Shown: one piece after another, positions 1,227 to 61,593 of the stretch
Numbering within the stretch: the first letter of the stretch is position 1
How the letters are laid out: each line of letters starts with the position of its first letter
Source: Octopus bimaculoides
Taxonomy: Eukaryota
Assembly (NCBI RefSeq): GCF_001194135.2
Contig: NC_068986.1
Span: 89,211,945 to 89,275,944, forward strand
Length of the DNA stretch: 64,000 nt
Reading direction: 5' to 3'
Program-made: the position numbers and the translations under genes
The notes under the pieces: generated by a model
Databases searched by the model: none
What the model was told of the DNA's origin: nothing
Seen by the model: the letters and a program-made list of their open reading frames with translations, nothing else

Positions 1227-1315
1227 ACGAATACTCACATATCAAATATGTGCTATGAATAAGCAACACAAATGCGAAATGGACTTCATGTCCTATGCTA
1301 ACATAGTTTGTGATG
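1227..1315 (+). CDS. Gene 1 A-type exon (89 nt, phase 2 to 1)
   Basis: tttcag|A CGA ATA ... GAT G|gtaaga; [29 protein letters not shown]. Confidence 0.85.
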
Positions 1316-2482
1316 GTAAGATATTTATAGTTATTTATTTATTTATTGTATCTCATTTGCGGATAGGCTTTGTCATGAAGCTAAATTCGAAACAGAGTTT
1401 AATTTTGGCACGTAACGTTTTACAATCAATTCAAATTAAGGTTTGAGAAAACACTATTGGCCTTTATCAACGTTACTATGCATTGATTTACTTTTCGATC
1501 TTACTTCCTGATAACATAATAGAAGAGGTCCCACATGATGTATATTATGTTTTTCCATCTGTCTACTCGTTGTGAGACAGATCTCATTTTTGTTCCTGTA
1601 CTAATTTCTGTGTTTGTTGAAATTTTTGCAGCCTAACTCTTTTTCTTTCCACTCACATTTTCTTAAAGAATGGTCCTTGCCAGGTTATTAGATCTTGTTA
1701 AATATGCATACTATTCATTCTTACGGTAATCTCCATGTTGTATTTCTGATTAGCAGCGTGAAACAACACAGGAATTGTAAAAAAAAAAAAACAAGTCATA
1801 AGTGTACTGACAGTATAAAAGCTCGCAGAATACCTAAATGTACCTTTAGAATTAACGACATTTTTCAAAAGCCAGAATATAAACGGTATTTCAATAATTA
1901 TAAGCATTACCGAGGCTGCGAACTGGCAGAATTATTTAGCATTCCGAACGACATGCCTAGCGATATTTCGTCCGTTTTACTTTCTGAGTTCAAATTCCAC
2001 CGATGTCGACATCTTTTACGGGTCAATAAAATAAGTAGGTCTTGAACACTGAGATCGATGCAGTCGACTTAGCAAAACTTATCCGAAAACTGTTCGCCTT
2101 ATGCCAAAATTTGAAATCAATAATTATAAGCATTATTGTTTTTTTATCTACATTTTAGAATACAACAGCAGCCAAACTAGTTTTCGTGTACAACATTACT
2201 AAGTTTTATGAAATCCATACCATTTTCCAGTTCCGTGTTACACGTGACAACAAATAACTTTGATTCACAGGAGATACAAACGTTTAAATTTGTTAAGAAG
2301 TATGTAACATTTCGTCTTTAATAATATTTGAAAATTGAATATCTAAAATATATCTATTTTAGAACAAGCAGACGCGGGTGATTGCAAAGCAATGTACCAA
2401 TTAACTTGCTATGTAGCCAAAAGAGACTATCCACCAATGCATCCAGATAAGTACCACTGCCAGTGCGTATATACATTTGCTG

Positions 2483-2532
<50 letters not shown>

Positions 2533-2654: not shown

Positions 2655-5600
2655 TTACTATTACTATTACTACTTATACTTCAGCTTACAATAACACTTA
2701 TTTATTTCTATAAATCAAAAGTTGTGTAAGTTAAGATTATCGATTGGTGGTCATGTAGTTTCGGATTTGGTTCCACTGTGCAATATTTTTGGCGATTGAT
2801 TTCTTTATAATTACCTTTTTAACTGGATATTACGTGTAGTTGTGCGTATGTGTATATCTGTGTGTTCAGAGTGTGTGCTTGTATGTATGTGAAAGTGTGT
2901 GTGTGTGCGTGTGTGTATGTTTGTGTGTGTGTCGATATGACCAGTTAAACGCTTTACCCCAATAAATGTAATAAATGCGCCCTTTTAAAGCCTAGCCAGG
3001 CTCATGGGCCCGGTTTCCTAGTTTCAATGGTGTATGTGTTCCCCAGCTGGACGAGACGCCAGTCCATCGCAGCGTTACTCATTTTTGCCAGCTGAGTGGA
3101 CTGGAGCAACGTGAAATGAAGTGTTTTGCTCAAGAACACAACGTGTCGCCCAGTCCAGGAATCGAAACCACAATTTTATGATCATGAAGCTGAGACCGCG
3201 CCTCCACTACCCCAATAAAACCTCAGTCTAATTACTGATACGGGTAAACATAATAGACTAAAGCCGTACAGTGATATTGTCAATAGTTAATTACTAACAA
3301 TTTCTGCATTGGCAAACAAGGCTACCAATAATTGATTGGAATGCAGTAGTTCACTAGTGTATTCTACCTAATTTATACTAAATTATCTTCCTCGCAAAGG
3401 GCATCTCAACTCATGTTTAGTAGGGTACTAAACATAAAGCTGACTTCTACTACTCTATGGACAAGTATAGAAATGTGGAGCTAGGCAACAAACTGTTCAA
3501 TATAACCCCAGTCTCTGAATACGAAAAATTCCATAAAACTTGGAAGTGTGAAAAGATAGTTACTCATACAAGTAATTTGACCTCACAGTGTAAATAATGA
3601 CTACACTGCTACATATTTGAAACTGGTACATAATTTTTTATCAATACGTAAACTAGAAATATTACTAAGTTAATGAATAATGCTTTATGATTTCTAATTT
3701 TAAGTAATGCTTATCTATTTATTTTCTTCATCTAGGCGCATAGCCACATATCAAAAGTGTGCTGAGAAATTCGAAGACAAACATTGCATCGAATCGTTTA
3801 AAAGAGTTTATAACAGTACTTGCATGAGTATGATTATTTTATCAATTTAGAATATTGGCAAAATCAAATCAGTTAAAGTATGAAAACGGGCAATATAAAA
3901 GTAAAGTTATTCTTTAAAGTTTATTTGCCAATAGAATGTGGCGGTCCTATAAATGACGATGTTACTATTGTTTAAAAGCCTAAGGAAAAATATCTTTTCC
4001 AGCTGGCTGTCGACACACAATCTGTATCCGTATAGTGTTTGCAAGGGAGGTCATCGCACCCATCTCCAGACTTACGTGATAGTCACAAACTACGGTTTCT
4101 GGGTGTTTACTCGTCCTCAGTGTGAGATGATTATTGGCTGTTGATGAAAGCTTTCTCCACTCGCAAACACTATATATTCTTTAAGCGACACACAGACGCT
4201 GATCTCATATAGAGAAAAACAACTTGCTTTACATCTCTCAGCAAGAGATATGCAGTAACAGTATCGAATAGTAAAGTTCATTTACCAACAGAATGTGCCG
4301 GTCCTATAAAGGACAATGTTACCATTGTTTAATCCCCAAGAAAACATCTTTTCCATGTTACTGCATATGTTGGCAAATAAACTTTACTATTCAATACTGT
4401 TATTGCATATCCTTTGCTGAGAGATTTAAAACGAGTTGTCTTTCTCTACACGAGATCAACGTCTGTGTGTCGCTTAAAGAATATATAGTGTTTGCGAGTG
4501 GAGAAAGCTTTCATCAACATCCAGTAATCATCTCACAATGAGGACGGGTAAGCACCCAGAAACCATGGTCTGTGAGTATCATGTAAGGCTGGAGATGAGA
4601 GCGATTACCTCCCTTGCAAACACTTTACGGACACAGGCTGTGTGTCGATATCCAGCTGGAAAAGATATTTTCCTGAGGCTTAAACAACAGTAACATCGTC
4701 CTTTATAGGACTGCCACATTCTATTGGCAAATTAACTCTACTATTCGATACTGTTACTGCATATCTCTCGCTGGGAGATTTAAAACAAATTGTTTTTCTT
4801 TAAATCTACTTGAAATAGCTATTTCTGTTGCCAAAAACAAATTCACAAACATTTATACAGAAACTACTTTTGTTATCATGAAATATGGGGCATAGATTAC
4901 AAATGATGACATGGAATAAGACCAGAATCGTATATTTTAATTAAGATGTATATTTGAATGTTTCCTCGAACTCTCAAGAAGTATGAGATAAAAAAAAAAT
5001 ATTAAATGTAGACATTATTTTTCAGAGGCAACAGAGAACTGCAATATTATATTCAGAACATTTTGTCCTCAAGCCATAACAGATTATCCTATACATATCG
5101 ATAAATATTCCTGCAGGTACATATGTTGTTTTTATTCCATTGAATGTTATTATTACATATAATATTGAAATGTATATACTTAAATATGCAGTAGTATCAC
5201 TAACATACTAATAGTTCTTATGATGTAGAATTTTTAATATTTCATCTTCAAAATCAGAGAGCACCGGTTCAAAAATTAGTACGTAAATTATATTTTGTCT
5301 TGAATAAGAAATACTTTATCAAGTCTGAAAATTAGACACTCGAAATTTAATATCAGTACCTGAAGAGTACATATGTTGCTAGATATTTCAAATTGGTATA
5401 AAGTTTAGAAGCCCAAATAGCTTGAACACACTACATCGATTATCCAAAATAGCACCAATACATGAAGCATTTTTTTCATTGATGAAAGGATGTTATATTC
5501 TTTTTTATATTCCAGACGCTTACTCGCATACGAAAAATGCGCTATTTCGTTGAAGCACGAATGCGCTGAGATCTTCCACTTATATGCTCTCATCTTTTGT

Positions 5601-6979
5601 TCATATGGTAAGATTTTGCTGTTAATTTAATTTAGTTTACTGAGGGATAGGCTCTGTCAACGCAGTAAATTTCTATTAGGAATTACAGTAATAAAGTTCA
5701 TTTTTACAATCAAATCATACGTTTACAATTAATTCATATCAACGCTTGAGAAAGAAATATTAGCTGGTACTAATGTTAGTATTCGTACCAGCTAATAATG
5801 TTTTTTTTCAAGCATTGATTTGTCTTCAGCTTTGACTTCCTGGTGAATCATAGAAGAGGTGCCATGTGCTCCGTACAAGGTTTTCCCATCAGTTAGCGGA
5901 GAGCATCGGATCTTGTTATCTACATTAATAACGTCAGTGTCCATCAACATTTCCTTGCTTTCCTAATTTTCTTTCTGCTAGCAGTTTGTTAAAGAATTTT
6001 CTTTGCCATGTTATTAGAAATAAGCATACCGTCACTATTGCCTTTTTTCAGATTTGTAACATTGAATTCTCTACCATGTGGTGGATAGTTTCGCGTGCCC
6101 TCTCACTGATTTGGTCCAAATACAAGATACATAGGATATTCCACCTAATCTCAAGTGCTTCTGTTTTCCTTTTATCTATGTTGTAAAGATCCATATTTCG
6201 CATGCGTATGTACCCTTCAGCGTGTCAATGGTTTATGGTGCCCTTATTCATTCTAATATTATGCATGGGGGTGATGTTTCTAATCTTCCATATTGGCTCA
6301 TGCCATTTTACTGCGCTCATTTTCTTCAGAACCCCTTGGTTTTTATCCCTGATTAATAGTTGCTTCCACATATTTGATATACAGTTAATATCTAGTTTTT
6401 CACTTTGGACATGCATGTCATGTTCTGATGAAATCCTTGGAATTTGGTATGAGCATGTCTTGTACAGTTTTCATCTTAATCAAACTTATTGGAAACCATG
6501 CAAAGGTACTGTCTAAGTTGATCAATTTATTCTAACTTACTGCCAGTTTATCCACTTGCAAGATAGACTTTGTTGATAGAAATAGTTTTATTGCATTATA
6601 GAATTCACTAAAAGTAAACTTCGGCATTAAGGTGTGCAGAATAGAGAAGTGGAGGAAATAGCTTTTCATCAATGAAGACCAACTAAGTGCCACATAGGTT
6701 CGTTGATCGTTTCTGTTGTCTAGCCAGGAAGGCGCAGCAATATGCAAACAGAGATTAGACCTCGGAAAAAGAACGGCTAATCCGCACGGATGGAAAATTG
6801 TAAATCCCTACACTTCCATCATAATAGATATCCTGAAAGTATGTATAACATTCTTTGTACGAGGTTATGCATCGCAGATTTTCGGCACTATTTTCATACC
6901 CCAACACTTTAATTTCCACAAAGATATGAATCACTATGTACAGACTTCGTAAGTATATATAAATATTTATATGTGTGCA

Positions 6980-8241: not shown

Positions 8242-11200
8242 TAGATATACTAGATATAATACCCGGCGTTGCAAGGGTCAGAAAGTAGTAAATATTTAGA
8301 GGGTCTAGTTATGTTGTCAGTCTACATTACAGCAGTCCGGACCTCAAACGGTAGTGCAAAAATGAATTGGGCATTCCAAAGTTTTATAGAGTTTTATTTA
8401 GGTTAAGGTTAGAGTTAACAATGCAATTTGAGATCACTCAGTCTATGACAAATAAGTGTTTGTCCGTCCATGTGGTGACTCGTGTTGTATACCTCTCTGT
8501 ATCACTGCTGCCCGGCGCTATCCGATGATGCAACATTGTAGTGTGCATTGCAATGGTGTGTAGAGAGATTTTGGGGTTTATCAGATGTAGACACAGAGAG
8601 TGAATCCAAATTTGTATTTAACAAGTGAGCATTTTGGGGGATTGGGCTGTTTAAACAATCGTTAAGTACAACTGTCGTTAAAATGGGGAGAGTGATTGTA
8701 TGTTGATTAGTTGTCATGACGAATGGGTAGTTTCGACGATGAATGTTTGTCCACACGATTTATGTCGCACAGTGCCCGAAACTGCCATAGCGAATGCGTT
8801 CCATGTATCTCTGCCCTTTTCATAAGCCTCTATCAGTTAATTGGCGTAATATTGCATGCCTCCTTTCTGCTTACACATTGAATGCATTAGAAGCGCATAA
8901 GAAAATACTGATCGGTTGAAGTTACGTCCTTAAAGATGCTCGATCGACCATTAAGCCATTGTTGGAGTAATTATCCCTTCTATTTTTTTTAAAAACCTAG
9001 ATGCTGTCCTAAGAGGGTTGTAACTTAATAGGTTTCTCTTTGTGAAATGGGTTGACTGTGTGCTGTTAGTTTTAGAGTAAAAGCGGATCTAAAGTCCATT
9101 ACACACGTCTGAGAGGATGCTGTCTAAATCAGCTGCTTTGTGAAACTGTACGTTACCTTTTCACAGTATAAACAGTTACGAATTCTCATCCTAATACCCC
9201 TTGGTAGACAATATTTTTCGTTCTACTCCGAGGTGAGTAAACGAAGAGACTTTCCTTGCTTCCCACCCGGGAACAATCGACGTATAGCTGACCGTGTGAG
9301 AAGCATGATTCATCAAAATGCAACCCTGCCACCGATAGTGTCTGCCCCTGTGACATTGCAAAACAGTCTAAGCTGGAACTGCAGACGGTGAAATGCAAAG
9401 AGAATATCTGCACCAGATGGAATGAGGGGGATTCTGGGGATGAAAACGTCCTCACCTTTGCCACAGCCGGACAAAATGGTGACTTCAAGAACGTACTTCA
9501 TAGCCTTCTTAATAACCAAGCGTGTCCCATTGCAAAGCTTTCGAGGGTCTAAATTCCTCAGCAGCATGACAGGAACTCCGAATTTAACTTCCAGTGTATG
9601 TGGGGGCAGCCCAGGTGGGTCAAGGGAATTAAGAAACTCCAATGGATAGTTCACTGCCTGGTCGTCGTCGGATACAGAATCGATTGACCTTAGACGTGCA
9701 GTCTTCCGGGAAGCGAATGCAGCAGCTTAGCGTTGAGAGCGATCACTGAACTGTTTTTTGGAGCCAAAATGACTCTTTCGGAAATCGAATTCATGTGAAG
9801 GTAGTTCCTTTGTAGATTTTGAAAGACATGTGCCTCTAGCTCATCGGAATTACTGACAGGGATGCAGAGGTGAGTTAGTGACAGTTCCCCGTTTTCATCG
9901 AGCGGAACAATACCGTTTCCGATTGACAATATGTCACATGCAAAATCTGATGCCATCTGGTCACCACGAAGCTGTGCCCTGATGTTTGTTTTGAGAGACA
10001 ATGTTGTAACATTTTTCCACAGCACAGAGAACTTTAGGCAGGCTCTGACTACATCTGCCCTGGTTCCCTTGGGTATTACAGGAAGCGTTTGTCGGAAATC
10101 GCAAGACAGGAAGAGAGTTATACTATCCATCGTAGCCGGACAGTCTCTCATGTCTTGAAGAGTGGTGTTGAGAGCTTCGAGGGATCGCTTGTGGGCCATT
10201 GTGCATTCATCCCAAACTATCAGCTGGCAACTCCGGAGAAGCAAGCCCTTTCCAGACGTTTTGGTGGTGTTACAGGAAGGCACTTCGGACCTTGTCAAAT
10301 CAAATGGTAGCTTAAAGGTTGTGTGCGATGTCCTGCCACCGGGCAGTAAAGTGGCTGCAATGCAAGATGAGGCCACAGCTACGGCTACGTCTTTTCGGTG
10401 CCTTACTTTAGTCAGGAGAAGCTGAATAACGAACGTTTTTTTTTTTGTCCCTCCAGGTGCATCAAGAAAACAATACCCCCTTTTCGTTTCTACATGTGAT
10501 CAAGGATGGTACTGTAAGCCCACCGTTGCTCAGGCAGAAGTTTGGGCTCATTTTGCTGAAGGTATTGATTAAGGACTTCAGTGTCATAGGACGTTTCACG
10601 TATTAACTCTGTTGGTATTGAAGGCGTCCTGCGTCGCAATGGTTGCGGCACCCCGTATGTAAGTAAGGTATTACCTCCCAGAGAAAAAGTCTTGTTCTCT
10701 ATGTCAAGTAAAGCAAAGTTGTAAATGAAATCATCTTCAGCAGGCAAGCAGGTATGATGCAGTTGGGCCTGGTAATGGACGTCTTCCGATAGGTCGTGTC
10801 TGTACTTTAACCACAATTAATGGGGATCGGGAAGTGCAGGAGTACAGAAAACAGAGCTCTGAGACTTTTCGGTGACTGTGAAACAGCAGCCTCCGCAAGC
10901 GTAGTATCCCACTGCGCATAGTTTTCTAGCAGCCCACGTAGTAGGCAGGCCTCCCTAAACGTAGCACATGTATGGCCGCTCACAGTCTTTAGTTGGTCGA
11001 AGAACTTTGGAGCCCTTGCCTCGTGAAGCAGTAATTGGAGGGTGAAGCATTCTTGTTGGCTCGGGTGAACCGTGTACACTCTGCCAAGGCAATTATCAAA
11101 GTTAATCTAAGGGTGACCATCAACGGTTCGGCCTGACTTCCTTCGCTGCCACTTACACTTATTCCATGTGTAATATGACGGGACTTGAGGATAAAGTAGA

Positions 11201-13937: not shown

Positions 13938-15276
13938 CAAAAGAAGTTGTACTTTAACTTTAATGATAGTGTACTCCCTTGCACCTCTGATCATAAGCCC
14001 CCACGTCCTAAATATAGGCTGTGCCCACAACTATCGCAAACATTACTTTTACCGGGGTACATGAATATCATTTTATACGTGTACTCGGGAAAGTGGAATC
14101 ACCATACGAAACTAAGAAATTGTAAAAATCAAAGAATCTGCCTGTATTTGGATGGTAAAACTGTAACATATATTCCTTTGCACAAGATGTAGCTGTTTGT
14201 TATAAAATATTATAAGCTTGTTTTCAATTTTAACCATTATTATATGGGATTTAGTTTCTTATATAAACTACCACTGCCACTACAAATATAGAAATATAAC
14301 TTTAACTCACAGAGGAGTCAAAATGTTAAAAACTGTGCTTTAGACGGCATAAACTAGTATCTTTGAAATTACAGATGAAATAGGGTTTATTAATGAAATT
14401 TACTTAGGATCCAGGAACACTGAAAACTGTTAACATTGATTAGTTAATAATTTTTAATCTTCAGCGGATGCTTAGAGTGTTTTTGAAAAGTATTAGGTGG
14501 AGGTAATAGAATTATAGACACCTTCATACAATATCTCTTACTAAACGCATTTCTGCATGGAAAACCGATACAGAAATTGTAAAACACAAAATACGTCATA
14601 CGAGAATTGTTAGAACTATAAATACTCGTAGATCTAAAGCTATTATAAGAATTAATGTTTTTTTTTTCTAATATTCAAATCAGCAAAATTCAAGGAATAA
14701 GGAACATTTCTTAATTATAAACACTATTTTAATCTACCTTGAAGACTACAATACCAGCCGAAAAATATTTCGAGTTCAATATTGAATATTTTATAGCAAC
14801 CTATCCATCTTTAGCATCCATATTATTGATGACAACTCATAACTTTCATTCAGATTAGAATTAATTGTTTCAATATATCATGTATCATGTGATAGTTCAT
14901 CATTATAAGAATATTTAAGAACTTAATTTTCAAACTCTCAAAATTGTAGGACATGCAGATGCTATTAACTGCCAAATAATGTACAGATCAGTGTGCTCTG
15001 AAGCCGTCAATCAATACCCACTGGTATATCCAGATAATTTTCGCTGCCAGTACGTATATTTAATTATTATTACTTTTATCATTAATACAACTTATATTTA
15101 ATTTTTCAGTTGTGTAATTAAGAAGATCGCTTTGTAAATACATGGTTGTAGTTTCGGCTGTATAGTGCTGCACATTTCGCAAGTGTATTTCACAATTGTC
15201 CTCGGTGACTAGTGTCTTTTAACTGAACACGTTAAGCGGAAGACCATCGTAGTGACAAATGTGACTTGGTGCGTGT

Positions 15277-15334: not shown

Positions 15335-16848
15335 GAGAATGTACGAAAAAACAACAACAGACGAGGACAGGTGGTGTAAATAACAAAAGGATGTATTAGT
15401 ATGACGCTCAGGAATACGGCAAGTCTTTGACGTTTCGAGCTACGCTCTTCAACAGAAAGAATACGGAGACAAGGAGAAAAACACGGAGAAAAAAAATTGA
15501 ATAGTGTTCAGTCAACGGTCAATCATATATATATATATCTATATATATATATATATATTATGCTTGAGTGAATGTGGATGTTTCTCATTCCTTGGCAACT
15601 GTTTTAGTCTTAGAAATAATACATTTCTAAATCTCTGAGAGAGTTGTATGCAGTAGTGATACGATGAAGTAGTTGTATGCTGTCAATTTAATGTGACAGT
15701 CCCCTGAAGAGAATAATACTACTGTTGGTTAGACCTAGGAAGCTGCACCGCTTCCTGTCGGCCTTGACATATTTCCTGTGTCCTTATGTTTTAGTCTTGT
15801 TTGCATCCCCGTAATTAGGCGGTTTCTCTAAGGAAAAGACTAAGGGATATATATGATATAAATGAAGTAATGAGGTCCATATGATAAACAAGAACACTTC
15901 AGGGAAATGTCCGAACAAGGCTTCAGCCCAGTGACTAAAACGGGTAAAAATAATAAATTAAACCTGTACAAGGATATCATCAGCAGTTAATTACTAACAC
16001 TTTTTGCATTGGTACAAGACTACTAGTAATTAATTGGACGCAGAAGTTCACTAATGTACTCTATCTGAGTGTCGCTTTTAGCAGAGTGCTAAATCTAAAG
16101 CTGATTTCTACTGTATGGACAAGGATAGAAATGTGGAGCTAGGCAACAGACTGTTCGGTATAACTCCGGCATCTGAATACGAATAATTTCATAATAATTA
16201 GAAGTACGATAGTTACTGATAGCAATGATAGTGACTATCTTGGTAGATATCTGAAACTGATATTTTCATTCGAAAATCAGAAATATTGTCGTATCTATGA
16301 ATAATGTGTTTTGCTTTTTAATATTGGTTTCAAACAAAGGCGGTGAGCTGGCAGAAACGTTAGCACGCCGGGCGAAATGCTTAGCGGTATTTCGTCTATC
16401 CTTTCGTTGTGAATTCAAACTCCGTCAACGTTGCCTTTTTCTTTCATCAATTCAGGATCGATAATTTAAGTACCAGTTGCGTACTGGGTCGATCTAATCG
16501 ATTGGGCCCATCGCCTAAAATATCGGGCCTTGTGCCTAGAGTAGAAAAGAATATTGGTTGCAAACAAACGGCTACCACACAAAATAGGTAGCAGGTAGTG
16601 TAAATTGCTGAGTCGTATTTCATCCGTCTTCACGTTCTAATTCCGTTGAGGTCGACTTTACCGTCCACCCTTTCGAAATCGATAAAATAAGTACCAGTTC
16701 CTAAATTTGAAATCAATACTGAATTAACGTTTGCCGATTTCTTTTTCTTCGTCCAGGCGCATTAAGTTATTTCAAGAGTGTGCTGTGAGTTTCAAAGATA
16801 AACATTGTGTGGAAACATTTCAAAAAACCTATAAAGTTGAATGCCCAT
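1227..16848 (+). CDS. Gene 1 (5'-truncated by window edge): multi-exon six-cysteine-repeat protein; exons 1227-1315, 2363-2462, 3736-3827, 5026-5116, 5516-5607, 14950-15049, 16757-16848
   Basis: All seven exons have AG/GT boundaries and compatible phases. They splice into one open frame: [218 protein letters not shown]. The 3' end is not identified. Confidence 0.85.
1400..1690 (-). mobile_element. Short paralogous copy of the RTE-like LINE fossil
   Basis: cgttttacaatcaattcaaatta and cataatagaagaggtcccacatg align with ~5720-5870 and ~17458-17580. Confidence 0.5.
2363..2462 (+). CDS. Gene 1 B-type exon (100 nt, phase 1 to 2)
   Basis: ttttag|AA CAA ... TGC CA|gtgcgt; (E)[32 protein letters not shown](Q). 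Confidence 0.85.
2482..2676. repeat. Compound (ACT)n/(GCT)n/(ATT)n microsatellite
   Basis: Directly visible just downstream of the exon at 2363-2462. Confidence 0.95.
2967..3207 (-). mobile_element. tRNA-derived SINE with target-site duplication
   Basis: The minus strand starts gtggaggcgc...gtggtttcgattcc (B-box-like). It is flanked by TACCCCAATAAA at 2955-2966 and 3208-3219. Confidence 0.75.
3736..3827 (+). CDS. Gene 1 A-type exon (92 nt)
   Basis: catctag|G CGC ... ATG A|gtatga; [30 protein letters not shown]. Confidence 0.88.
3917..4790. repeat. Large fold-back palindrome built from a ~360 bp unit
   Basis: 3920-4345 (one unit plus a partial second) is the reverse complement of ~4350-4790. 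For example tttgccaatagaatgtggcggtcctataaatgacgatgttac pairs with gtaacatcgtcctttataggactgccacattctattggcaaa. Confidence 0.9.
5026..5116 (+). CDS. Gene 1 B-type exon (91 nt)
   Basis: ttttcag|AG GCA ... TGC AG|gtacat; (K)[29 protein letters not shown](R). Confidence 0.88.
5516..5607 (+). CDS. Gene 1 A-type exon (92 nt)
   Basis: attccag|A CGC ... TAT G|gtaaga; [30 protein letters not shown]. Confidence 0.88.
5730..6750 (-). mobile_element. Degraded RTE-clade LINE (RT and C-terminal region)
   Basis: Minus-strand remnants [21 protein letters not shown] resemble the RTE motif YACETWTL...KKLEAFEM. Many stops. Confidence 0.55.
6984..7071. repeat. (GT)n microsatellite
   Basis: Directly visible. 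Confidence 0.97.
8179..8240. repeat. (TA)n microsatellite at Helitron 3' flank
   Basis: Directly visible. Confidence 0.95.
8250..13880 (-). mobile_element. Near full-length Helitron with disrupted Rep/PIF1-helicase (RepHel) ORF
   Basis: Minus-strand motifs in order: [28 protein letters not shown] (HUH), [90 protein letters not shown]. The 3' end has a hairpin (ccc...ggg, 8262-8277) and terminal CTAG followed by T (8250-8253). The 5' end merges into (TA)n. Frameshifts and stops are present. Confidence 0.93.
13873..13934. repeat. (TA)n microsatellite at Helitron 5' flank
   Basis: Directly visible. Confidence 0.95.
14950..15049 (+). CDS. Gene 1 B-type exon (100 nt)
   Basis: attgtag|GA CAT ... 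TGC CA|gtacgt; (G)[32 protein letters not shown](Q). Confidence 0.88.
15424..15460 (-). ncRNA. Minimal type I hammerhead-ribozyme-like motif (core variant) in a short repeat at ~15332-15525
   Basis: The minus strand reads UCUUU-CUGUUGA-A-GAGC gua GCUC-GAAAC-GUC-AAAGA, giving stem I UCUUU/AAAGA, stem II GAGC/GCUC and a GUC triplet. A6 is replaced by U. Confidence 0.55.
16339..16549 (+). mobile_element. SINE (GGCGG.GAGCTGGCAGA-headed family) with TSD
   Basis: ggcggtgagctggcagaaacgttagcacgccgggcgaaatgcttagcgg; flanked by aatattggtt(t/g)caaacaaa on both sides. Confidence 0.8.
16757..16848 (+). CDS. Gene 1 A-type exon (92 nt), last intact exon found
   Basis: cgtccag|G CGC ... CCA T|gtaaga; [30 protein letters not shown]. 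Confidence 0.88.
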
Positions 16849-17276
16849 GTAAGATTAATTGTTTTTAATTTTAAAATCACGTTAGCTGTTCAAAATATAA
16901 TTTATTGTTTTGAAAAAAAAATTCATAATTTGTTGTTTATAAGTTGGATTACAAAATAATGTTTTGTACCTTAGTTCTAATGATTAACCTTAAAACAATT
17001 TTGTGGGAATTTTTCAAGCAAAATTCGATGGTATTTTTTAAAATTTCCTCTTCATTCGCAGATAGCCACTGCCTAAAAAATCTGCTTCTAAAATATATTT
17101 CCTGTCTTGATAAGGAAATATCTTACCTATCCTGGATAATAGAAACGTTAGGAGCTGTAGCAATTAGATCTGAGAATTATTAAATGGCACACAATTTGTC
17201 AACACTAGTGAGATTGACACTTACCACAAGGATATTCTTTTATATGCAATCATTTTCTCGTATTTGTATATTCCAG

Positions 17277-17369
17277 ACAAAGACACGCGTATCAAAATTG
17301 TACAATGAAGAAAAATGAGAAGTGTTCAAAAGAGATTTGACATGCTTTATTTTATCTTTTTTTGCGAAG
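17277..17369 (+). pseudogene. Frameshifted A-type pseudo-exon of gene 1
   Basis: attccag|A CAA AGA CAC GCG TAT CAA AAT TGT ... gaag|gtaatt. It is 93 nt, whereas intact A exons are 3n+2. QRHAYQNCTMKKNEKCSKEI is followed by TGA. Removing 1 nt restores ...CSKEFDMLYFIFFCE. No B exon is visible upstream. Confidence 0.75.
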
Positions 17370-17439
17370 GTAATTGTTTTTATTAGTTATCTTTTTTTTT
17401 GCAGTAGACTGCTGTATCGCTGTAAACTCTAAACAGAAA

Positions 17440-18360
17440 TTATATTTGTCAAGTTACGTTTTACAATCAATTCAAATTAATGCTTGCGTGAGAAATATTC
17501 CCCTGCACCAATGTAATATACATTGAATTGTTTTCAGTCCTCCTTTCCTGGTGGTGTCATAGAAGCGGTTCCATATGCGAGGCACTGGAGTTTTCAAGCA
17601 ATGGGTGGATTTCGGCAGATCTATCCGTTCTTTTTTTCTCTTTTTCAATAACTTTTGTATCCGTCAACATTTTCCTTAAACAGGTCTCCTCTCCGCTGAT
17701 GATTTCTTAATGAGTGTTCTTTGCTGCGTTATTACATCATGCTACAGAAGCATCCCATCTTATATTTATTTTCTAAAGATTTGTGATATTACTTTCTTCG
17801 ATGCCACTGTTTGGTGGATGGTTTCGCGTAAATTCTCATTGGTGATCTTCTCCAAGTACGAGATTCCTTGGATATTTCCTCCTATTTCGTGTGCCTGTAT
17901 TTTTCGTTGAATCTATATTTTAAGGATCTGTATTTCGCATGCGTATGGAAGGTGTAGGATACTTACGATGTACAATGCTTATACTCTTTCTTATATTTTT
18001 GATGGAGGTGCTTTTGTCATCCGTATTGGATCGTCATCTTGCTGAACGCTTTTTCTGTACTTTTCTTCCCAGGAGTTTCGGTCTTGATCCTTGATCGATA
18101 ATATCTGCCTCCAATTATTTGATCTGCTATTTATCTCCAGTATCTTCATTTTGACATAAATGTTTCTGTGGAAAAGCGTGGAGTTTGTTCTAGGGGTATT
18201 TTGTACATATTTGTGTTCAAGCTTCTTGAGGACATTAGCAAGGTACCGTTAATTCAACTACTTTATCCACACTGTTTGTTATATAATCCACTGAAATCAC
18301 GTATTGTAGTTTTTTTTCATATATTCTTTCCGAAGTTAACTGCACTTATATCATCTTTAA
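17440..18360 (-). mobile_element. Third paralogous copy of the RTE-like LINE fossil
   Basis: Colinear with 5730-6520 (catagaagcggttccat; tggtggatggtttcgcg; atatttcgcatgcgtatg). Confidence 0.6.
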
Positions 18361-21241: not shown

Positions 21242-21278
21242 ATGAATATGCACCTGGCCTGCGAAACATTATTTCCAG
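21242..21278 (+). pseudogene. Possible decayed copy of the first (signal-peptide) exon
   Basis: ATG + 11 codons + G (37 nt, the same length as gene 2 exon 1; MNMHLACETLFP) with no GT donor. It lies in a block (~20170-21350) paralogous to ~23970-25340. Confidence 0.35.
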
Positions 21279-28264: not shown

Positions 28265-28272
28265 TATATAAG
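28265..28272 (+). promoter_or_regulatory. TATA box candidate for gene 2
   Basis: TATATAAG ~70 nt upstream of the ATG at 28339; this would imply a start site near 28295 and a short 5' UTR. Confidence 0.5.
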
Positions 28273-55686: not shown

Positions 55687-58243
55687 TCAAAAATACCTTA
55701 GGAATGAGAACCCAGGTTCGAAATTTTCCCAAGACATCTGATGAAGGCTGGAGGGTATATCAGCCGAGACGTTGTGTTAACAACAAACAAGGTGAAGTCA
55801 AATATCTGCCATATGTAAATAATGTACATAATTCTTCATCTCTTAAATATAGAACTGGAAGTTACTGCAAATTTACACATATTTTTTACCAGTTTTTCCA
55901 TATATATATATATACATACATCTTGCAGACGACTCATCGAATTCGAAAAGTGTGCTGAAAGCGATAACGACAAGCATTGCAAAATTTATCTTCGCTTACT
56001 CTATACTATGAATTGTGGAGGTAAGAATGACTTATACAGAATGAATGTAAAGCATTCATTAAAATATTAAATCTAACTGTAACATTATTAATACGTCTTT
56101 CAGCAGCCATAATCAGTGTGATATTACAAATTTGAAACATCACAGCCACAAGAAAAATATATGCAACCTACCTTATTAAACGCTTTTCCAGACTAGGGTA
56201 CTCTCTACTACACACAAGACAAATAACTCAACCTGATACACGCAAATACCTTAGACTGTATCTTTTTCTCTACATTTCTGAATGGCACCATAACTCAGAA
56301 TTATGAATATAGAAGTCCCCCTCATGATGGCACTAGGTGTGATAGATCGATGATTCGGAAAACTAGATTACAGAGAGTAATGTGATTATTATACATTTTT
56401 CTTTAAATCTAAATCAAGTATCCCCATCGTTTCCTATACGCAAATTTACAATATTACATAGCGAAAATATTTTTGTCACCGTCAAGCAACGTATTTATGT
56501 TGGCACTCTGAGGCTTACGACGTCGGGGGTTCCAGTTGATCCGATCAACGGAACAGCTTGCTCGTGAAATTAACGTGCAAGTGGTTGAGCATTCCACAGA
56601 CACGTGTACCCTTAACGTAGTTCTCGGGGATATTCAGCGTGACACAGTGTGACAAGGCTGACCTTTTGAATTACAGGCACAACAGAAACTGGAAGTAAGA
56701 GCGAGAGAAAGTTTTGGTGGAAGAGTACCACAGGGTTCGCCACCATCCCCTGCCGGAGCCTCGTGGAGCTTTAGGTGTTTTCGCTCAATAAACACTCACA
56801 ACGCCCGATCTGGGAATCGAAATCGCGATCCTATGACCGCGAGTCCGCTGCCCTAACCACTGGGCCATTGCGCCTCCACCAAGCAACGTAATATACATTA
56901 CAAATGATAACGTGGATTGTGAACAAGGTAAAAAGTTTTAAATTATGGTGTGTACAGTATAACACTTTCTTAGTATGCCAAACGTATTTTTTTAGATTTA
57001 AAGAAAAAATGTTAAAATGTTTTGCAGTGGAAAAAATTTGCTTACGTGCGATTGAATCAAAATGTGAACATGCTGAAAAAGAGTATCCCATAAGTAACCC
57101 AGATTTGAATTACTGCAAGTACATATATTTTCTTACATATCTGACTATTATTATTACATCTAATATTTACATATTTGTATATTTGATTGTACAGTTGCAC
57201 CATAAATTATTAATTAGAAATGTTTGTTATATTGGTACAAGCCTAGAAATGCGTACTCGAAGTGTATTTGATTCAACAGAAAATAATAATTGACTCCTGC
57301 AAATTACACCGATCTAAACACGATGCATATCGACGACATTATGACTTGTACTGACTATTGGCAGATTACCGAATATATACGTAATTCCAAGGAGGGACAC
57401 AAGTCAAAAGATACACATTTTGGACAATGGTTCTTGAACAATTCAAGAGCAATTTCCCAAGTGAAATGCGCCAGCACCTTTTAAAATTTAATCTGCATTT
57501 CCAAATTTAGAAATCAGTTTATAATACACATACAATTCCCCTCTCAAAAAGGAATTACATTGCTGTCCCGAAAATATAAAAATTAAACACAGTGACAACT
57601 AGATTTTAGCATGTAGAAAAGATATTGTTACTAGATATTTTAACCGTAGCGAAATTTAAGCTGAGTACTTCGATAATCAAAAATATTGATGAAATTATTA
57701 AAAGCTAGCAGGACATATTGAAAACAATATGAAATTTCAAACGAGCAAGAAATTTCAAAAACCTCTTTTCAAATCCTGACATTTCATTAAAACTGTAATT
57801 TCAGATATATTCAAAATGAACATGTAAGCATAGGTGTGGCTATATGTATGAAGTTTGCTTCCCAACCGGGTTCAGTCTAATATACCTTCGAGCAAACCAA
57901 GGACTTGTTAGTGGATTTGATTGGCAAAAACTGAAAGAACTCCGTCGTATATAGATATATATATATATGTGTGTGGGGGGGGGGTGAGTCTGTGTCCCCT
58001 TCCACCGCTTGACAACCGATGTTAGTGCGNNNNNNNNNNNNNNNNNNNNNNNNNNNNNNNNNNNNNNNNNNNNNNNNNNNNNNNNNNNNNNNNNNNNNNN
58101 NNNNNNNNNNNNNNNNNNNNNNNNNNNNNNNNNNNNNNNNNNNNNNNNNNNNNNNNNNNNNNNNNNNNNNNNNNNNNNNNNNNNNNNNNNNNNNNNNNNN
58201 NNNNNNNNNNNNNNNNNNNNNNNNNNNNNNNNNNNNNNNNNNN

Positions 58244-58275
<32 letters not shown>

Positions 58276-58810
58276 GCTTTCGGGTCGAATGTTTTTTTTA
58301 TACGGTGCTGTATTTTACAATCCTGTAAATACTAATAATGGTATTTTTTATATAAGCTTAAAGCTTATAGCGATCACCGTGCAATGACTAACGAAATAGT
58401 TTGATAAGAGGGCGTATAAGACCTCGACAGAAAAAAGCAGGCTTTCCTATCCGCGTTGGAGTCGAAACTACATCCCTTTGTTAACGCGACTAAGTGTGTT
58501 ACCTTTACACCAGTGAATCGTGTAACGGTAACACACTTAGTCGCGTTAACGAAGGGATGTAGGTTCGACTGCCACGCGGATAGGAAAGCCTTCTTCTTTC
58601 CGTCGAGGGCTTATATACCTCGTTATTAGAGTATTTTCCTTAGCCATTTCAGATATGTATATTTCTTATAATTTAGAACTAACAGTAAAAAGTTGTGATT
58701 ATAGTACTCGGAGTACTATAATGACAGCTTTAACTGTTTGGTCTAAATTCTAACATATATAAATAATCATCTATTTGGCTAATTTCGAGGTCTCATTGTT
58801 TTGTAGTTAC

Positions 58811-58882
<72 letters not shown>

Positions 58883-60359
58883 TTAAATGAAGTAGCCAGT
58901 AGTACAGTCTGAGTGGGAATATATGGTTAAGTTTATGGAGCTCTCTGATAATCTCTCTTTGAGTCTCCTATCCCATCATGCCATAAATAGTTTAGTCACA
59001 TCGCCAGAGAAACTGACATCGGTGGCTGCGCTTTTCTCTTGGGCGTAACCTTGGTATTAAACTTGAATATCTGGACCTTGAATGTGACTCTGGTACTCGC
59101 ACCCACTGCACGTACGACCATCTTTGTAACCTGATCGTTGATATAAGCCTAAGATGAAGGTATAGGCATTGGTACCAGTGTCACTGGTGATGTGTTGTGA
59201 CTAAGCTCGTCAGTGCTCTTCAGTGCTCTACCAACATGCTCAAGTAGAAGATAGAGGCTCGATTAATAATATAGAGGTAAAGTTATTATACACGCATAGA
59301 ACAGACACGATATTTATACAGATTACAAAGATTGCACACAGTAATAAACAGACGAAGCGTCAACAAAAGACACGAATGGAACAATATCACCCATCCACTA
59401 CAACACCACGCAACACGACGACTAAAGACAGAAGGATGAGAAAAACTGTTACAAACATTCCAGAACAAACAAAAGACAACCATGCACATACTTATGATGA
59501 AATATACGAAATAGAGATAAATAGATAAACAAAAGAAACTATACGAAAAGGCACGGGTACAAACAATAGAGTAAGCAAACCAAAATATATGCACACAAAC
59601 ATATGCAGTAACTTCACAAACTGCCGCAACAGCATGAACATCAACAACAACAACTGCCCCAATGGTAACGACATGAACAAACACGCAAACATAGAATGCT
59701 ACAAAGCAATATCAAAATAAGGGCCAAGAACAGATTTACTAGATTGCTGATATTTAGCAATGGTTTTTCCCATTGTGTTGATTTGTCATTTTCTATGATC
59801 AATAAAACTATCGGAACTTTTGACGACACAGATATGTTGATATATAGAAAAAACTGTCCAACTACCATCACGGCTCAGTCAACCATTTAAGATTATTTTC
59901 ATTTCATTTCATTTCATTTGAGTTCAGTCCAGGTACATATCTACCTGTGTATCTATAAATATATCTCTCTATTTGCATATTGGTATATCTATATACTCAA
60001 CTATGTACCAATCTATCTAGCTAGGCAATCATATCTACACTCACTTCTGTATATCTCCTCTCATAATACCGATAAGTATTTGAACTAAACAAAATATGAA
60101 TAATGATGCCACGGCATAGTTATAGCCGTTGATTTGGAACGTTAAAAGATAAAAGCGTAATATCTACAGTTATTTGCTAACACGGTTATTTCGCTTTAAT
60201 TCAACTATCTATCGATAATTATTTTATCGTATTAATTCATAAAACTTCATGATATTGTCTCACTATGTTAAACATTTCGACTGCAGTTGTGATTAGATCA
60301 CGCAAAAGCAGAATAATAGCGGTCTTCTCCTCCTCCTCTTTATCTCTGTATATATGTGT

Positions 60360-60395
<36 letters not shown>

Positions 60396-61593
60396 AAACG
60401 CGTGCGTGCATACACACATATACACGCGCACGCGCACACACACACACATACNNNNNNNNNNNNNNNNNNNNNNNNNNNNNNNNNNNNNNNNNNNNNNNNN
60501 NNNNNNNNNNNNNNNNNNNNNNNNNNNNNNNNNNNNNNNNNNNNNNNNNNNNNNNNNNNNNNNNNNNNNNNNNNNNNNNNNNNNNNNNNNNNNNNNNNNN
60601 NNNNNNNNNNNNNNNNNNNNNNNNNNNNNNNNNNNNNNNNNNNNNNNNNNNNNNNNNNNNNNNNNNNNNNNNNNNNNNNNNNACGTTCTGAGTTCAAATT
60701 CCGCCGAGGTCGACTTTGCCTTTCATCCTTTCGGGGTCGATTAAATAAGTACCAGTTACGCACTGGGGTCGATATAATCGACTTAATCCGTTTGTCTGTC
60801 CTTGTTTGTCCCCTCTGTGTGTAGCTCCTTGTGGGCAGTAAAGAAATAAGATACGTTAGCACGCCGGGCGAAATGCTTAGTGGTATTTCGTCTGTTTTTA
60901 CGTTCTGAGTTCAAATTCCGCCGAGGTCCATTTTGCCTTTCATCCTTTCGGGATCGATAAATTAAGTACCAGTTGTGTACTGGGGTTGATCTAATCCACT
61001 GGCCCCCTCCCCAAAAATTTTGGGCCCTGTGCCTAGAATAGAAAAGAATATTTATTGACCGAAATGGTAAATTAAGATAGCAATTAGAAAACACGTTACT
61101 TTTGCCAAGTAAGGTCATAACTATGAACTTTATATTAATGGTACGGACAGTTTTTCCTTAGTCCTCCATGTACGCAAGCTTTTGTTATTATCATCCATTT
61201 GAATTACAAACTACAAAATACACATTACATCAGATAAGTTGGAATGGACATTATAATGATCATAATTTTTTTCTTTTAAATCTAACTGAAGTACGTCCAT
61301 CAAGTGCCACACACAAAATCGCAGCAATTCAGGCAGAAAGCAACTTCGTCACCATAAAGTCACGTAATATAGATTAAAAATCTAATACTGATTAAGACCA
61401 GAATTAAATTATTTAATTTATGTTGTGTCTTCTAGTATTTCCTCATTGTATCAAGTTTATTTTTGATAACCAAAGAATCTGTCCAATTTTTACGTGTCGT
61501 AGATGATGACAAATGTATAGACGAGTTCCAAAGAATTTGTCGCTCAGGGGAAGACATGTATGCTATGCGGATTCCAGATACAAATTTCTGCCC
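28339..61593 (+). CDS. Gene 2: putative secreted six-cysteine-repeat protein (signal-peptide exon plus at least 12 repeat exons; continues past window)
   Basis: Splicing gives an open frame: MKDCISICLLIAGLATANDCIEQYNARCPSIIGLNPIRNPDTGYCN-RLVAYKRCANAGEKCEDYFEQTFQDQCC-GRTETEDCLDRARQTCKHALILHPRSNPDKHFCR-RMRMYALCASAIHNYECKDHFVNLYFGECK-SQLTTRDCMAMYSQSCFEAIRDYPIWQPDFEYCK-RLVVLRKCAEEEKNKLCVGFFDKLAEDSCS-PVDNCTNSLKTTCLQAEKNYPILKPDTNYCD-RLRVYEICAYTKNHTCKHYFSDLFHAMCK-SHEEQRDCMEIYRSTCLKAFSEYPELNPDRNYCR-RLIEFEKCAESDNDKHCKIYLRLLYTMNCG-VEKICLRAIESKCEHAEKEYPISNPDLNYC. The A exon expected between 57118 and 61503 was not found. Confidence 0.85.
29590..30720 (-). mobile_element. Gypsy/Ty3 LTR retrotransposon integrase fragment
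   Basis: RVIAPTALQKQVLQEIHVG...RSYVYWLTMDRDIENCVKSC...PWPRAHIDYAGP...YYLIVVDS and GVPDTLVSD; frameshifted. Confidence 0.85.
30985..32110 (-). mobile_element. R4/NeSL-like (RLE-type) non-LTR retrotransposon fragment
   Basis: YKYLGVDE (RT), WTLDEIRAIDVKTWKILT, and the zinc-knuckle remnant CRLCG...LSSCP...RHD. Confidence 0.75.
33809..33908 (+). CDS. Gene 2 B-type exon (100 nt)
   Basis: tttctag|GA CTT ... TGC AA|gtatat; (G)LATANDCIEQYNARCPSIIGLNPIRNPDTGYC(N). Confidence 0.85.
34432..34517 (+). CDS. Gene 2 A-type exon (86 nt)
   Basis: atttcag|T CGT ... TGT G|gtaaga; RLVAYKRCANAGEKCEDYFEQTFQDQCC. Confidence 0.87.
35880..36400 (-). mobile_element. RTE-clade LINE RT fragment
   Basis: Minus strand RQGNTISPKHFTAGVDMVMKDIDW resembles the RTE motif RQGD.ISPKLF. 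Confidence 0.6.
36602..37887 (+). mobile_element. Full-length (1286 bp) mariner transposon with inactivated D,D34D transposase
   Basis: TIRs tcaggccatcccataagtgctgtccga / tcggacagaacttatgggatgacctga with TA on both flanks. Motifs WVPHEL, VTGDEKWIFY, QDNA, YFPDLAPSDYHLF; in-frame stops. Confidence 0.95.
38696..38795 (+). CDS. Gene 2 B-type exon (100 nt)
   Basis: tttctag|GA CGT ... TGC AG|gtaggt; (G)RTETEDCLDRARQTCKHALILHPRSNPDKHFC(R). Confidence 0.87.
39213..39592 (+). mobile_element. tRNA-headed SINE with 16-bp TSD
   Basis: ggaggtgcaatggcccagtggttagggcagctgactcgcggtcgtaggatcgcagtttcgattccc. TATTTGTTATTTAAGT is at 39197-39212 and 39593-39608. Confidence 0.88.
41647..41738 (+). CDS. Gene 2 A-type exon (92 nt)
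   Basis: cttccag|A CGC ... AAA T|gtaaga; RMRMYALCASAIHNYECKDHFVNLYFGECK. Confidence 0.88.
43201..43300 (+). CDS. Gene 2 B-type exon (100 nt)
   Basis: tttatag|CT CAG ... TGC AA|gtacgt; (S)QLTTRDCMAMYSQSCFEAIRDYPIWQPDFEYC(K). Confidence 0.88.
43625..43835 (-). mobile_element. SINE 3' portion (third family)
   Basis: cttgtttcagtcatttgactgtggccatcctggagcaccgc...; related pieces at ~47340-47400 and ~48920-49120 on the opposite strand. Confidence 0.6.
43928..44758. other. Assembly gap (N run)
   Basis: N bases flanked by (TA)n. Confidence 0.99.
44773..45120 (+). mobile_element. CR1/L2-like LINE ORF2 C-terminal fragment
   Basis: LKVLGLYSLERRRERYVIIYIWKILEGLVPN...LGFRGPQLFNAL...FKTKLDAFLSTIPDE. Confidence 0.75.
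45851..46062 (-). mobile_element. tRNA-headed short element with (AAT)n spacer and hammerhead-like tail, truncated
   Basis: Minus strand: tagcgtagtggttaagagcgcgggc...gagttcgattcc (A/B boxes), (AAT)n, then CTGATGA-A-GGCTG gagggtatat CAGCC-GAAA, cut off by (TA)n. Confidence 0.7.
47826..47917 (+). CDS. Gene 2 A-type exon (92 nt)
   Basis: cttccag|A CGC ... TCT C|gtaaga; RLVVLRKCAEEEKNKLCVGFFDKLAEDSCS. Confidence 0.88.
50077..50167 (+). CDS. Gene 2 B-type exon (91 nt)
   Basis: cttgcag|CG GTC ... TGC GA|gtacat; (P)VDNCTNSLKTTCLQAEKNYPILKPDTNYC(D). Confidence 0.87.
51151..51239 (+). CDS. Gene 2 A-type exon (89 nt)
   Basis: atttcag|T CGT ... AAA T|gtatgt; RLRVYEICAYTKNHTCKHYFSDLFHAMCK. Confidence 0.88.
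53502..53601 (+). CDS. Gene 2 B-type exon (100 nt)
   Basis: atttatag|CC CAT ... TGC AG|gtacgt; (S)HEEQRDCMEIYRSTCLKAFSEYPELNPDRNYC(R). Confidence 0.88.
54555..55175 (+). mobile_element. 3' half of a mariner of the same family as 36602-37887
   Basis: GTVDEKWVFY, KKVLLSVWWDCK, QDNA, PDLA.SGYHLFGSLQNHL; ends in TIR tttatgggatggcctga followed by TA. Confidence 0.85.
55430..55860 (+). mobile_element. Penelope-like short element: inverted partial tail, tRNA-like head, (AAT/AAC)n and hammerhead-like tail
   Basis: 55430-55533 is an inverted copy of ~55716-55830. Head tggcgtagtagttaagagcgc...gagttcaattcc at ~55545-55625. Same family as 45851-46062. Confidence 0.7.
55733..55778 (+). ncRNA. Minimal hammerhead-ribozyme-like motif (mutated)
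   Basis: GACAU-CUGAUGA-A-GGCUG gagggtatat CAGCC-GAGAC-GUU-GUGUU. The core GAAAC reads GAGAC in this copy. Confidence 0.5.
55929..56020 (+). CDS. Gene 2 A-type exon (92 nt)
   Basis: cttgcag|A CGA ... GGA G|gtaaga; RLIEFEKCAESDNDKHCKIYLRLLYTMNCG. Confidence 0.88.
56494..56879 (-). mobile_element. tRNA-headed SINE (same family as 39213) with 11-bp TSD
   Basis: The minus strand begins gtggaggcgcaatggcccagtggttagggcagcggactcgcggtc. CAAGCAACGTA is at 56483-56493 and 56880-56890. Confidence 0.88.
57028..57118 (+). CDS. Gene 2 B-type exon (91 nt)
   Basis: tttgcag|TG GAA ... TGC AA|gtacat; (V)EKICLRAIESKCEHAEKEYPISNPDLNYC. Confidence 0.85.
58030..58243. other. Assembly gap (N run)
   Basis: N bases. 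Confidence 0.99.
58403..58628. mobile_element. MITE-like palindrome (~100 bp arms)
   Basis: ggctttcctatccgcg...atccctttgttaacgcgactaagtgtgttacc pairs with ggtaacacacttagtcgcgttaacgaagggat...cgcggataggaaagcc. Confidence 0.8.
58807..58881. repeat. (ATT)n microsatellite
   Basis: Directly visible. Confidence 0.95.
60452..60682. other. Assembly gap (N run)
   Basis: N bases. Confidence 0.99.
60683..61050 (+). mobile_element. Two head-to-tail SINE copies (family of 16339 and 26829)
   Basis: acgttctgagttcaaattccgccgaggtc occurs at 60683 and again at ~60900, with the two tail variants. Confidence 0.75.
61503..61593 (+). CDS. Gene 2 B-type exon (91 nt), last exon seen in window
   Basis: gtcgtag|AT GAT ... 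TGC CC|gtacgt; DDKCIDEFQRICRSGEDMYAMRIPDTNFC(P). Confidence 0.82.

Follow-up and report, generated by a model that had tools for sequence, protein, structure and literature searches.

Two adjacent Octopus bimaculoides genes for chains of six-cysteine helical domains, predicted to be secreted and putatively related to the RGM N-terminal domain

The window analysed here is a stretch of 64,000 nucleotides (nt) of Octopus bimaculoides DNA (NC_068986.1, positions 89,211,945 to 89,275,944, forward strand; chromosome CM046606.1), which is AT-rich (35.5% GC) and contains three runs of N. It carries a series of repeat exons for a small cysteine-rich domain, split between two adjacent same-strand RefSeq genes, LOC106874482 (gene 1) and LOC128248155 (gene 2), both named "uncharacterized protein". 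The 3' part of gene 1 and coding exons 1-12 of the 17 annotated in gene 2 lie within the window, and exons past its edge were read from CM046606.1:89,230,283-89,293,765 (GCA_001194135.2), of which the 45,662 overlapping bases are identical to the window. Gene 1 encodes XP_052824452.1 (401 amino acids, aa) and gene 2 encodes XP_052824892.1 (540 aa) and XP_052824891.1 (546 aa), with at least seven and at least nine domains per chain, respectively. A preliminary description made from the letters of the window had proposed real multi-exon genes in tandem and called them hidden. The exon, phase and frame analysis and the two neighbouring RefSeq genes support the former part, whereas the genes are not hidden, as RefSeq already annotates both. 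A literature search by the LOC and XP identifiers returned no paper on either gene. The gene and protein architecture set out below is, in our view, very likely correct.

A hidden Markov model (HMM) built from 11 complete repeats was used to search the complete set of 2,778 six-frame stop-to-stop fragments from the window and gave exactly 19 matches (E from 1e-13 to 2e-6), all on the plus strand, with the next fragment at E = 0.77; the 19-exon set is complete in the window and far from chance. Motif scans found six sites of [YFH]P...PD..[YFH]C and eight of the looser PD..[YFHW]C, all on the plus strand and none on the minus strand; sites of the RL..Y..CA type likewise lie on the plus strand, and looser cysteine-spacing scans yielded three further exons. 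Two exon types alternate strictly. Type A (91 or 100 nt) encodes C-x7-C-x14-16-C and ends in Y-P-x3-P-D-x2-Y-C, and type B (86-92 nt) encodes R-L-x2-Y-x2-C-A...C-x3-F...C. An AG acceptor precedes and a GT donor follows each of the 19 exons, with type A starting with 2 nt and ending with a further 2 nt (TGC+2 nt before GT), and type B starting with 1 nt after the AG and ending with a further 1 nt, mostly before GTAAGA. The derived boundaries coincide exactly with the outer limits, 1227 and 61593, of the preliminary description, whose 19 intact repeat exons plus a leader exon, with AG/GT sites and matching phases, agree with both the HMM scan and the boundary check.

One A+B exon pair encodes one domain of ~62 aa, with a phase-2 intron within the pair and phase-1 introns outside it. 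Because phase-1 introns flank each pair, whole domains can be duplicated in tandem without breaking the frame. Across the 19 exons, 57 of 57 cysteine codons, 38 of 38 splice sites and all reading frames are intact at a repeat identity of ~30%, and the exons outside the window are intact in like manner. No extra or degenerate repeat exon was found in 16848-28339, in 57118-61503 or after 61593, besides a remnant at 17277 that belongs to gene 1.

Gene 1 is represented in the window by seven exons, all on the plus strand, which join into a 218-aa open frame whose 5' end is cut by the window edge. The first, a type-B exon of a short-type repeat 4 (1227-1315), corresponds to residues ~194-223 of P0028, with gene 1 extending upstream of the window. 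It is followed by a long-type A exon of 100 nt (2363-2462), a B exon with C-x8-C (3736-3827), a short-type A exon of 91 nt (5026-5116) and a B exon with C-x7-C (5516-5607), each identified by splice sites and HMM together with the motif scan or, for 5026-5116, the cysteine-spacing scan. The remaining two are a long-type A exon (14950-15049), with a second possible acceptor, likewise in phase, at 14959, and a B exon (16757-16848) that is present in the older XP_014777710 and skipped by the current XP_052824452. The terminal coding exon (17277-17340, plus strand), a twentieth exon not among the 19 intact ones, is a truncated B-like remnant. Joined to A14950, as in the current RefSeq model, it reads QRHAYQNCTMKKNEKCSKEI and then a stop; joined to B16757, as in XP_014777710, it reads in the other frame, YKDTRIKIVQ, with the stop at 17308. 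The intron segment upstream of the remnant (16953-17151) is homologous to that upstream of B1227 (888-1084), so that the remnant fits a decayed short-type unit. The intron segments upstream of equivalent B exons, 3234-3547 versus 15934-16205 and 888-1084 versus 16953-17151, share 73-83% identity, a DNA-level match that is gone in the exons downstream of them; these segments are traces of four-exon unit duplications.

The array extends a further 18.7 kb or more upstream of the window. Five intact exons (B, A, B, A, B) are found at L003:1006-4692 (window-equivalent -18681 to about -14995), outside called genes and upstream of the RefSeq start of LOC106874482, the protein of which begins MILEDIRR... 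without a leader. A regex search of the 10 kb upstream of that start found no leader exon for gene 1. Gene 1 is probably 5'-incomplete, or else the upstream exons belong to an unannotated third gene. An assembly gap, L003:18534-19687, ends at window position 0, in the intron between a short-type A exon (L003 17324-17428) and B1227.

Gene 2 was assembled from a leader and 11 repeat exons into a 356-aa open frame reaching up to exon 57028-57118, and residues 1-355 of this model match XP_052824892.1 at 100% identity. The TATATAAG box at 28265-28272 (plus strand), 74 nt upstream of the ATG, is a candidate core promoter, judged from sequence only. The leader exon (28339-28375, plus strand) starts with the ATG at 28339, encodes MKDCISICLLIA + G, most of the predicted signal peptide, and ends at a phase-1 donor (G|GTAAGT). 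Spliced to A33809 it gives MKDCISICLLIAGLATA|NDC, a short and hydrophobic leader with A-T-A before the first domain; it carries signal-peptide features, in keeping with the secretion proposed previously, and is also conserved across paralogues. The repeats follow on the plus strand as A33809-33908 and B34432-34517 (repeat 1, with C-x6-C and an extra cysteine), A38696-38795 and B41647-41738 (repeat 2), A43201-43300 and B47826-47917 (repeat 3, the domain modelled below), A50077-50167 (short) and B51151-51239 (repeat 4), and A53502-53601 and B55929-56020 (repeat 5), all from splice sites and HMM with the motif scan or, for B47826-47917, the cysteine-spacing scan. Two further short A exons, 57028-57118 (repeat 6; RefSeq end at 57114) and 61503-61593 (repeat 7; motif scan and splice sites), complete the set within the window. 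Past the window, B, A, B, A and B exons lie at window-equivalent ~64044, 65950, 68628, 69027 and 69856, with a stop after ...ISCEL.

In exon 34432-34517, a seventh cysteine (...DQCCG) is present in the first repeat of gene 2. It makes the cysteine count of mature XP_052824892.1 odd (51), a point against the overall explanation given below that could reflect a free thiol or an intermolecular disulfide. In RefSeq isoform X1 (P0002; window 50077-53601), B51151 is read out of frame (FVCAYTKYVLTRRITPVNITSAISFTQCVN), and an acceptor upstream of A53502 restores the frame; this isoform is probably an artefact of prediction or else a splice form that is non-productive. The C-termini of the window's proteins read ...ISCEL, ...KCSKEI or ...RIKIVQ and have no hydrophobic tail.

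The three gaps in the window (43928-44758, 58030-58243 and 60452-60682) are all intronic, with (TA)n/(CT)n or (TG)n/(CA)n microsatellites on their borders. The first lies inside the intron between A43201-43300 and B47826-47917; the phases of these exons are complementary and RefSeq joins the two directly, so no coding continuity is needed across the gap, within which a hidden B+A pair may lie. The other two fall in the interval 57119-61502 (plus strand) and separate two A exons, 57028-57118 and 61503-61593, which cannot be joined in frame at canonical sites because 2 nt + 2 nt makes no codon. The repeat HMM found no B exon in the readable DNA of this 4,384-nt interval (57118-61503). The RefSeq model crosses it by means of a GC donor (T|GCAAGT) at 57114, by which the third cysteine is removed (...PDLNY-YDDKC...). 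From the HMM scan and the gap positions, we infer that at least one B exon was lost in an assembly gap between 57118 and 61503; the flanking A exons being both short-type, the loss may extend to B+A+B. With no B exon before it in readable DNA, exon 61503-61593 cannot be shown to continue the frame of the others. The two long open frames proposed earlier are not continuous at 57118-61503, where the assembly lacks an exon. Imperfections of the current RefSeq models are seen both here, with an apparently lost exon bridged by a GC donor, and at gene 1, with the 5' end probably absent and five intact upstream exons unannotated.

The domain follows the cysteine pattern C-x7-C-x15/16-C-x8-C-x6-8-C-x11-C, and 3-6 residues link one domain to the next. 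The 11 complete repeats share 26-35% identity with the first repeat; C7, C15, D28, C32, R34, C41, A42, C48 and C60 are invariant among them, and P23, P27 and F52 nearly so. Identity within a type is 38-48% for the long type (100-nt A, C-x8-C in B) and 36-45% for the short type, compared to ~31% across types. As repeats resemble their own type more, the regular parts of the array grew by duplication of a four-exon long+short unit, and the two-repeat super-unit of the preliminary description is real. Structural modelling with AlphaFold2 (AF2), using one domain (gene 2 repeat 3) and 43 non-redundant family domains as input, gave three helices (residues 5-21, 31-44 and 48-61) with a predicted local distance difference test (pLDDT) score of 92.1 and a predicted template modelling (pTM) score of 0.79. 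The model predicts with high confidence a three-helix bundle with six invariant cysteines, which would form three disulfides per domain, and is in agreement with the ~62-aa six-cysteine helical repeats first described. A long+short pair was modelled as two separate bundles (pLDDT 86.8, pTM 0.56), suggesting a two-domain chain in which the mutual orientation of the bundles is undefined, like beads on a string. The two-repeat unit as a single fold was rejected, since the AF2 pair gave only generic TPR-like matches in PDB, with a template modelling (TM) score of ~0.3 and a root-mean-square deviation of ~13 Å.

A profile search of 1.84 billion representative proteins gave 26 matches at E <= 1e-3. 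P0010 and P0013 (636 and 907 aa), with low-complexity 'DGTCEDYFQQLY' repeats, matched only profile positions 42-63 and were discarded as spurious. Besides the query gene there are 22 genuine relatives, and the 20 of these that were looked up are all from O. bimaculoides, O. vulgaris or O. sinensis. The family amounts to about two dozen clusters at 50% identity, all unnamed but one 'Secreted protein' and one 'GDNF/GAS1 domain-containing protein'. A word-indexed homologue search with the short repeat alignment gave no matches. Judging from these sequences, the family seems confined to octopuses.

Many family members have one to four domains, the leader and exon plan of the window genes and a hydrophobic C-terminus. 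Among them are many paralogues of 78-150 aa, in which a leader of homologous sequence (MK..IC I.LLI.G...) precedes a single domain, and small residues lead into a hydrophobic C-terminus. Such C-termini occur in 11 paralogous genes and in none of the window's genes. The single-domain, tail-bearing paralogue genes are clustered on another chromosome, where LOC128249789 consists of a leader (phase 1), an A exon (phase 2), a B exon (phase 1) and a tail exon, with the intron phases of the window genes; three genes of this type lie within 23 kb. From the look of the tail, a putative glycosylphosphatidylinositol (GPI) signal, the short paralogues are likely to be GPI-anchored. The window's genes represent a multi-domain, tail-less branch of the family, and their products are presumably soluble and secreted. 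Even without any link to a known domain, these results help to annotate about 25 'uncharacterized' octopus genes.

Comparison with known domains pointed repeatedly to one candidate, the domain at the N terminus of repulsive guidance molecule (RGM) proteins, a three-helix, three-disulfide module of GPI-anchored RGMs that binds BMP2/GDF5 and is said to occur only in RGMs so far. The Pfam family RGM_N (PF06535) was matched by 22 of the 43 single domains (best 2.2e-4), whereas each of the 19 other listed families was matched by one of 43, and the paralogue P0004 exceeds the RGM_N gathering cut-off, with 37.9 bits (summed over four repeats) versus 24.2. In a search of 177,635 PDB sequences with the family profile, RGMB N-domain chains were the top four matches (E = 0.03-0.4), the alignment pairing PDknyCkRLklyekCaeevdkeC with FDSEFCKALRAYAGCTQRTSKAC; a whole-protein sequence search of PDB gave no match. 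With the single-domain model as query, Foldseek returned RGMB (6z3m_I) as the sole match in PDB. Alignment by hhalign to 16 vertebrate RGM N-domains gave P = 0.0011 over 59 columns. The RGM profile used there is vertebrate only, with the RGMB, RGMA and HJV sequences checked against PDB; in the homologue search for RGMs, only vertebrate RGMB was among the matches listed.

Several observations weigh against this relationship. The window's own genes fall below the 24.2-bit RGM_N cut-off, with 15.8 bits (E = 0.017) for gene 1 and 8.5 bits (E = 3.3) for gene 2; the Foldseek match is weak (E = 5, TM = 0.42), and the hhalign probability is 20%. An HMM of vertebrate-only RGM N-domains barely separated the exons from background among the window fragments, its low scores arising because the exon split cuts the shared motif. 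The cysteines of RGMB are spaced C-x4-C-x22-C-x8-C-x7-C-x21-C, so that the outer spacings differ (x7/x15/x11 in the octopus domain versus x4/x22/x21), and neither the RGD/RGN loop nor His106 of RGM is conserved. The octopus proteins lack the RGM_C/vWD-like domain and the GDPH autocleavage site. PF06534 (RGM_C) was not matched in any family protein scanned with Pfam, and every true RGM retrieved has both PF06535 and PF06534; the octopus proteins do not belong to the RGM family proper. Because the signals are independent and specific, yet each weak and accompanied by real differences, we lean only slightly towards the octopus domain being a distant homologue of the RGM N-terminal domain. The earlier statement that no known family could be assigned should be toned down, as RGM_N was matched repeatedly and specifically (by Pfam, the PDB profile and Foldseek), albeit sub-threshold for the window's genes.

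Taken as a whole, the observations are best explained, with moderate confidence, by octopus genes for chains of secreted three-helix, six-cysteine, RGM_N-like domains. Tandem duplication of A+B pairs can keep the frame, and in the more regular parts long+short four-exon units were duplicated in this manner. The domains might act as extracellular ligand binders, possibly for dimeric ligands of the TGF-beta/BMP type, and the soluble multi-domain forms as multivalent binders or decoys beside the membrane-anchored single-domain paralogues. By analogy with RGM N-domains, BMP/GDF binding by the octopus domains is a speculation that we consider rather unlikely to prove correct. Similarly unlikely is the fuller scenario in which the RGM_N module was freed from RGM in octopuses and spread to about two dozen genes, some for GPI-anchored single-domain proteins and others for soluble chains with nine domains or more, as a lineage-specific BMP/GDF capture layer, with the window genes as multivalent secreted traps. 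If the RGM_N link is true, this would be the first BMP-binding RGM_N module outside RGMs, in tandem arrays without the neogenin-binding C-terminal domain. The locus would, moreover, illustrate cleanly how a domain expands via a duplicated phase-1/phase-1 exon pair, and would offer a testable handle on lineage-specific TGF-beta/BMP regulation in cephalopods.

The fact that each single RGM signal is sub-threshold for the window's genes can also be read differently, namely that the domain is an orphan, octopus-born cysteine-rich helical module unrelated to RGM, with the shared C-x2-L-x2-Y-x2-C-x7-C core arising by convergence among small disulfide-stapled helical bundles and the function being structural or protective (mucus, egg coat, sucker or skin matrix) instead of the binding of signalling ligands. 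Its occurrence in Octopus only would fit such an origin, and long tandem arrays in which linkers of 3-6 residues join small cysteine-rich domains are a typical feature of mucus and matrix proteins. However, three independent methods pick RGM among all families and structures (Pfam with 22/43 versus 1/43, the top four PDB chains and the only Foldseek match), and the GPI-like tails of the paralogues parallel the GPI-anchored RGMs; we regard an orphan domain, the main alternative, as possible but doubtful. Should the RGM link fail, what is left is a well-defined domain family, presumably secreted and apparently octopus-restricted, whose fold is modelled with confidence but which is ordinary as a class. 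The chains could further be polyprotein precursors cleaved into ~60-aa six-cysteine peptides, such as waterborne pheromones, toxins or antimicrobial peptides, on the model of the attractin-like pheromones of gastropods. The size, helical fold and six cysteines do resemble small molluscan signalling peptides, and single-domain paralogues exist, but the domain junctions show no dibasic or other recurrent cleavage motif (KR/RR occurs only inside the domain, in C-x-R-L), the linkers span just 3-6 residues, and Pfam attractin, PDB and Foldseek gave no match to such peptides, making this reading improbable.

Least probable of all is a decaying, non-functional exon array or a gene-prediction artefact giving no stable protein. 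In its favour, the assembly lacks one B exon, gene 1 ends in a truncated remnant of an exon, isoform X1 has one exon out of frame, and the introns are full of transposon debris. However, the cysteine codons (57), splice sites (38) and frames of all 19 exons have remained intact despite a repeat identity of ~30%, the exons outside the window are intact too, and the missing exon coincides with assembly gaps, so that a degenerate array appears highly improbable and chains of secreted RGM_N-like domains remain the preferred explanation.

The introns contain several mobile-element remnants. PIF1-like helicase fragments (PF05970, 2.5e-35; Pif1 2B domain) at 9316-10376 on the minus strand, with related open reading frames up to 12929, look like a decayed Helitron-type element within the 9.3-kb gene 1 intron. 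The first intron of gene 2 holds, at 29963-30517 (minus strand), an integrase H2C2 zinc-binding domain, the remnant of a long terminal repeat retroelement. A Mos1/mariner HTH_48 transposase fragment is located at 36765-37283 (plus strand) in the intron between B34432 and A38696, and 37204-37889 shares 75-78% identity with another mariner-like copy, at 54542-55177. A dispersed repeat resembling a short interspersed nuclear element, ~100-370 nt long and 78-93% identical, occurs in both orientations at 16337-16555, 24884-24993, 26820-27062 and 60683-61052, one copy abutting the gap 60452-60682. The next same-strand gene downstream (L001:56803-63483, window-equivalent ~75141 onward), a region with several gaps, has a 704-aa product that gave no Pfam match and, in its readable part, no match to the repeat-unit HMM.

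Other known systems resemble the octopus domain in general features. The two-repeat unit (~125 aa, 12 cysteines) is comparable in size and cysteine count to DUF19 (PF01579), a resemblance pointed out previously. It is not borne out, given that none of the 43 domains and neither protein matched DUF19 in Pfam at E <= 10 and that the AF2 two-repeat model forms two bundles (pTM 0.56) rather than one 12-cysteine domain. The GDNF/GAS1 domain (GFR-alpha; SM00907/PF02351) is likewise a cysteine-rich, all-helical extracellular domain of GPI-anchored proteins, and UniProt labels one paralogue, A0A0L8GPX5 (P0009), a 'GDNF/GAS1 domain-containing protein'. This name is the sole support for the assignment: Pfam GDNF matched none of the 43 domains, nor P0009, at E <= 10, and GFR-alpha chains were absent from the results of the PDB profile search and of both Foldseek searches, as was GAS1 from those of the search with the two-repeat model. 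A GFR-alpha domain is also larger and has five helices and five disulfides. Pheromones of the Aplysia attractin type are secreted molluscan proteins of ~60 aa, helical and with six cysteines. Their cysteine spacing is unlike that of the octopus domain, they were not matched in the Pfam, PDB profile or Foldseek searches, and the octopus domains are concatenated without processing sites.

The closest comparison is with the N-terminal domain of RGMA, RGMB and RGMC/hemojuvelin, as seen in PDB structures 4UHZ, 4UI0, 6Z3H and 6Z3M. Compared to RGM, helix 3 of the octopus domain is shorter, the domains occur in tandem (up to at least nine, versus one per RGM protein), the family is seen only in Octopus, and the window's proteins have no hydrophobic C-terminal tail, the GPI-anchor signal of RGMs. 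Both domains are three-helix bundles with six cysteines, for the octopus according to the AF2 model, and both have the core D-x2-[FY]-C-x2-L-x2-Y-x2-C-x7-C, which is placed at both ends of helix 2 and at the beginning of helix 3, with the central spacing C-x8-C-x7-C common to RGMB and the octopus domain. In RGMB, BMP2/GDF5 is contacted by the helix 2-3 linker and helix 3, with Leu103 inserting into a ligand pocket; this residue, at Cys5+4, corresponds to a near-invariant Phe or another hydrophobic residue in the octopus domain, the single positional parallel seen with regard to BMP/GDF binding. An extracellular location, as predicted for the octopus domain, and the GPI-like tails of the octopus paralogues are further features shared with the GPI-anchored RGMs.

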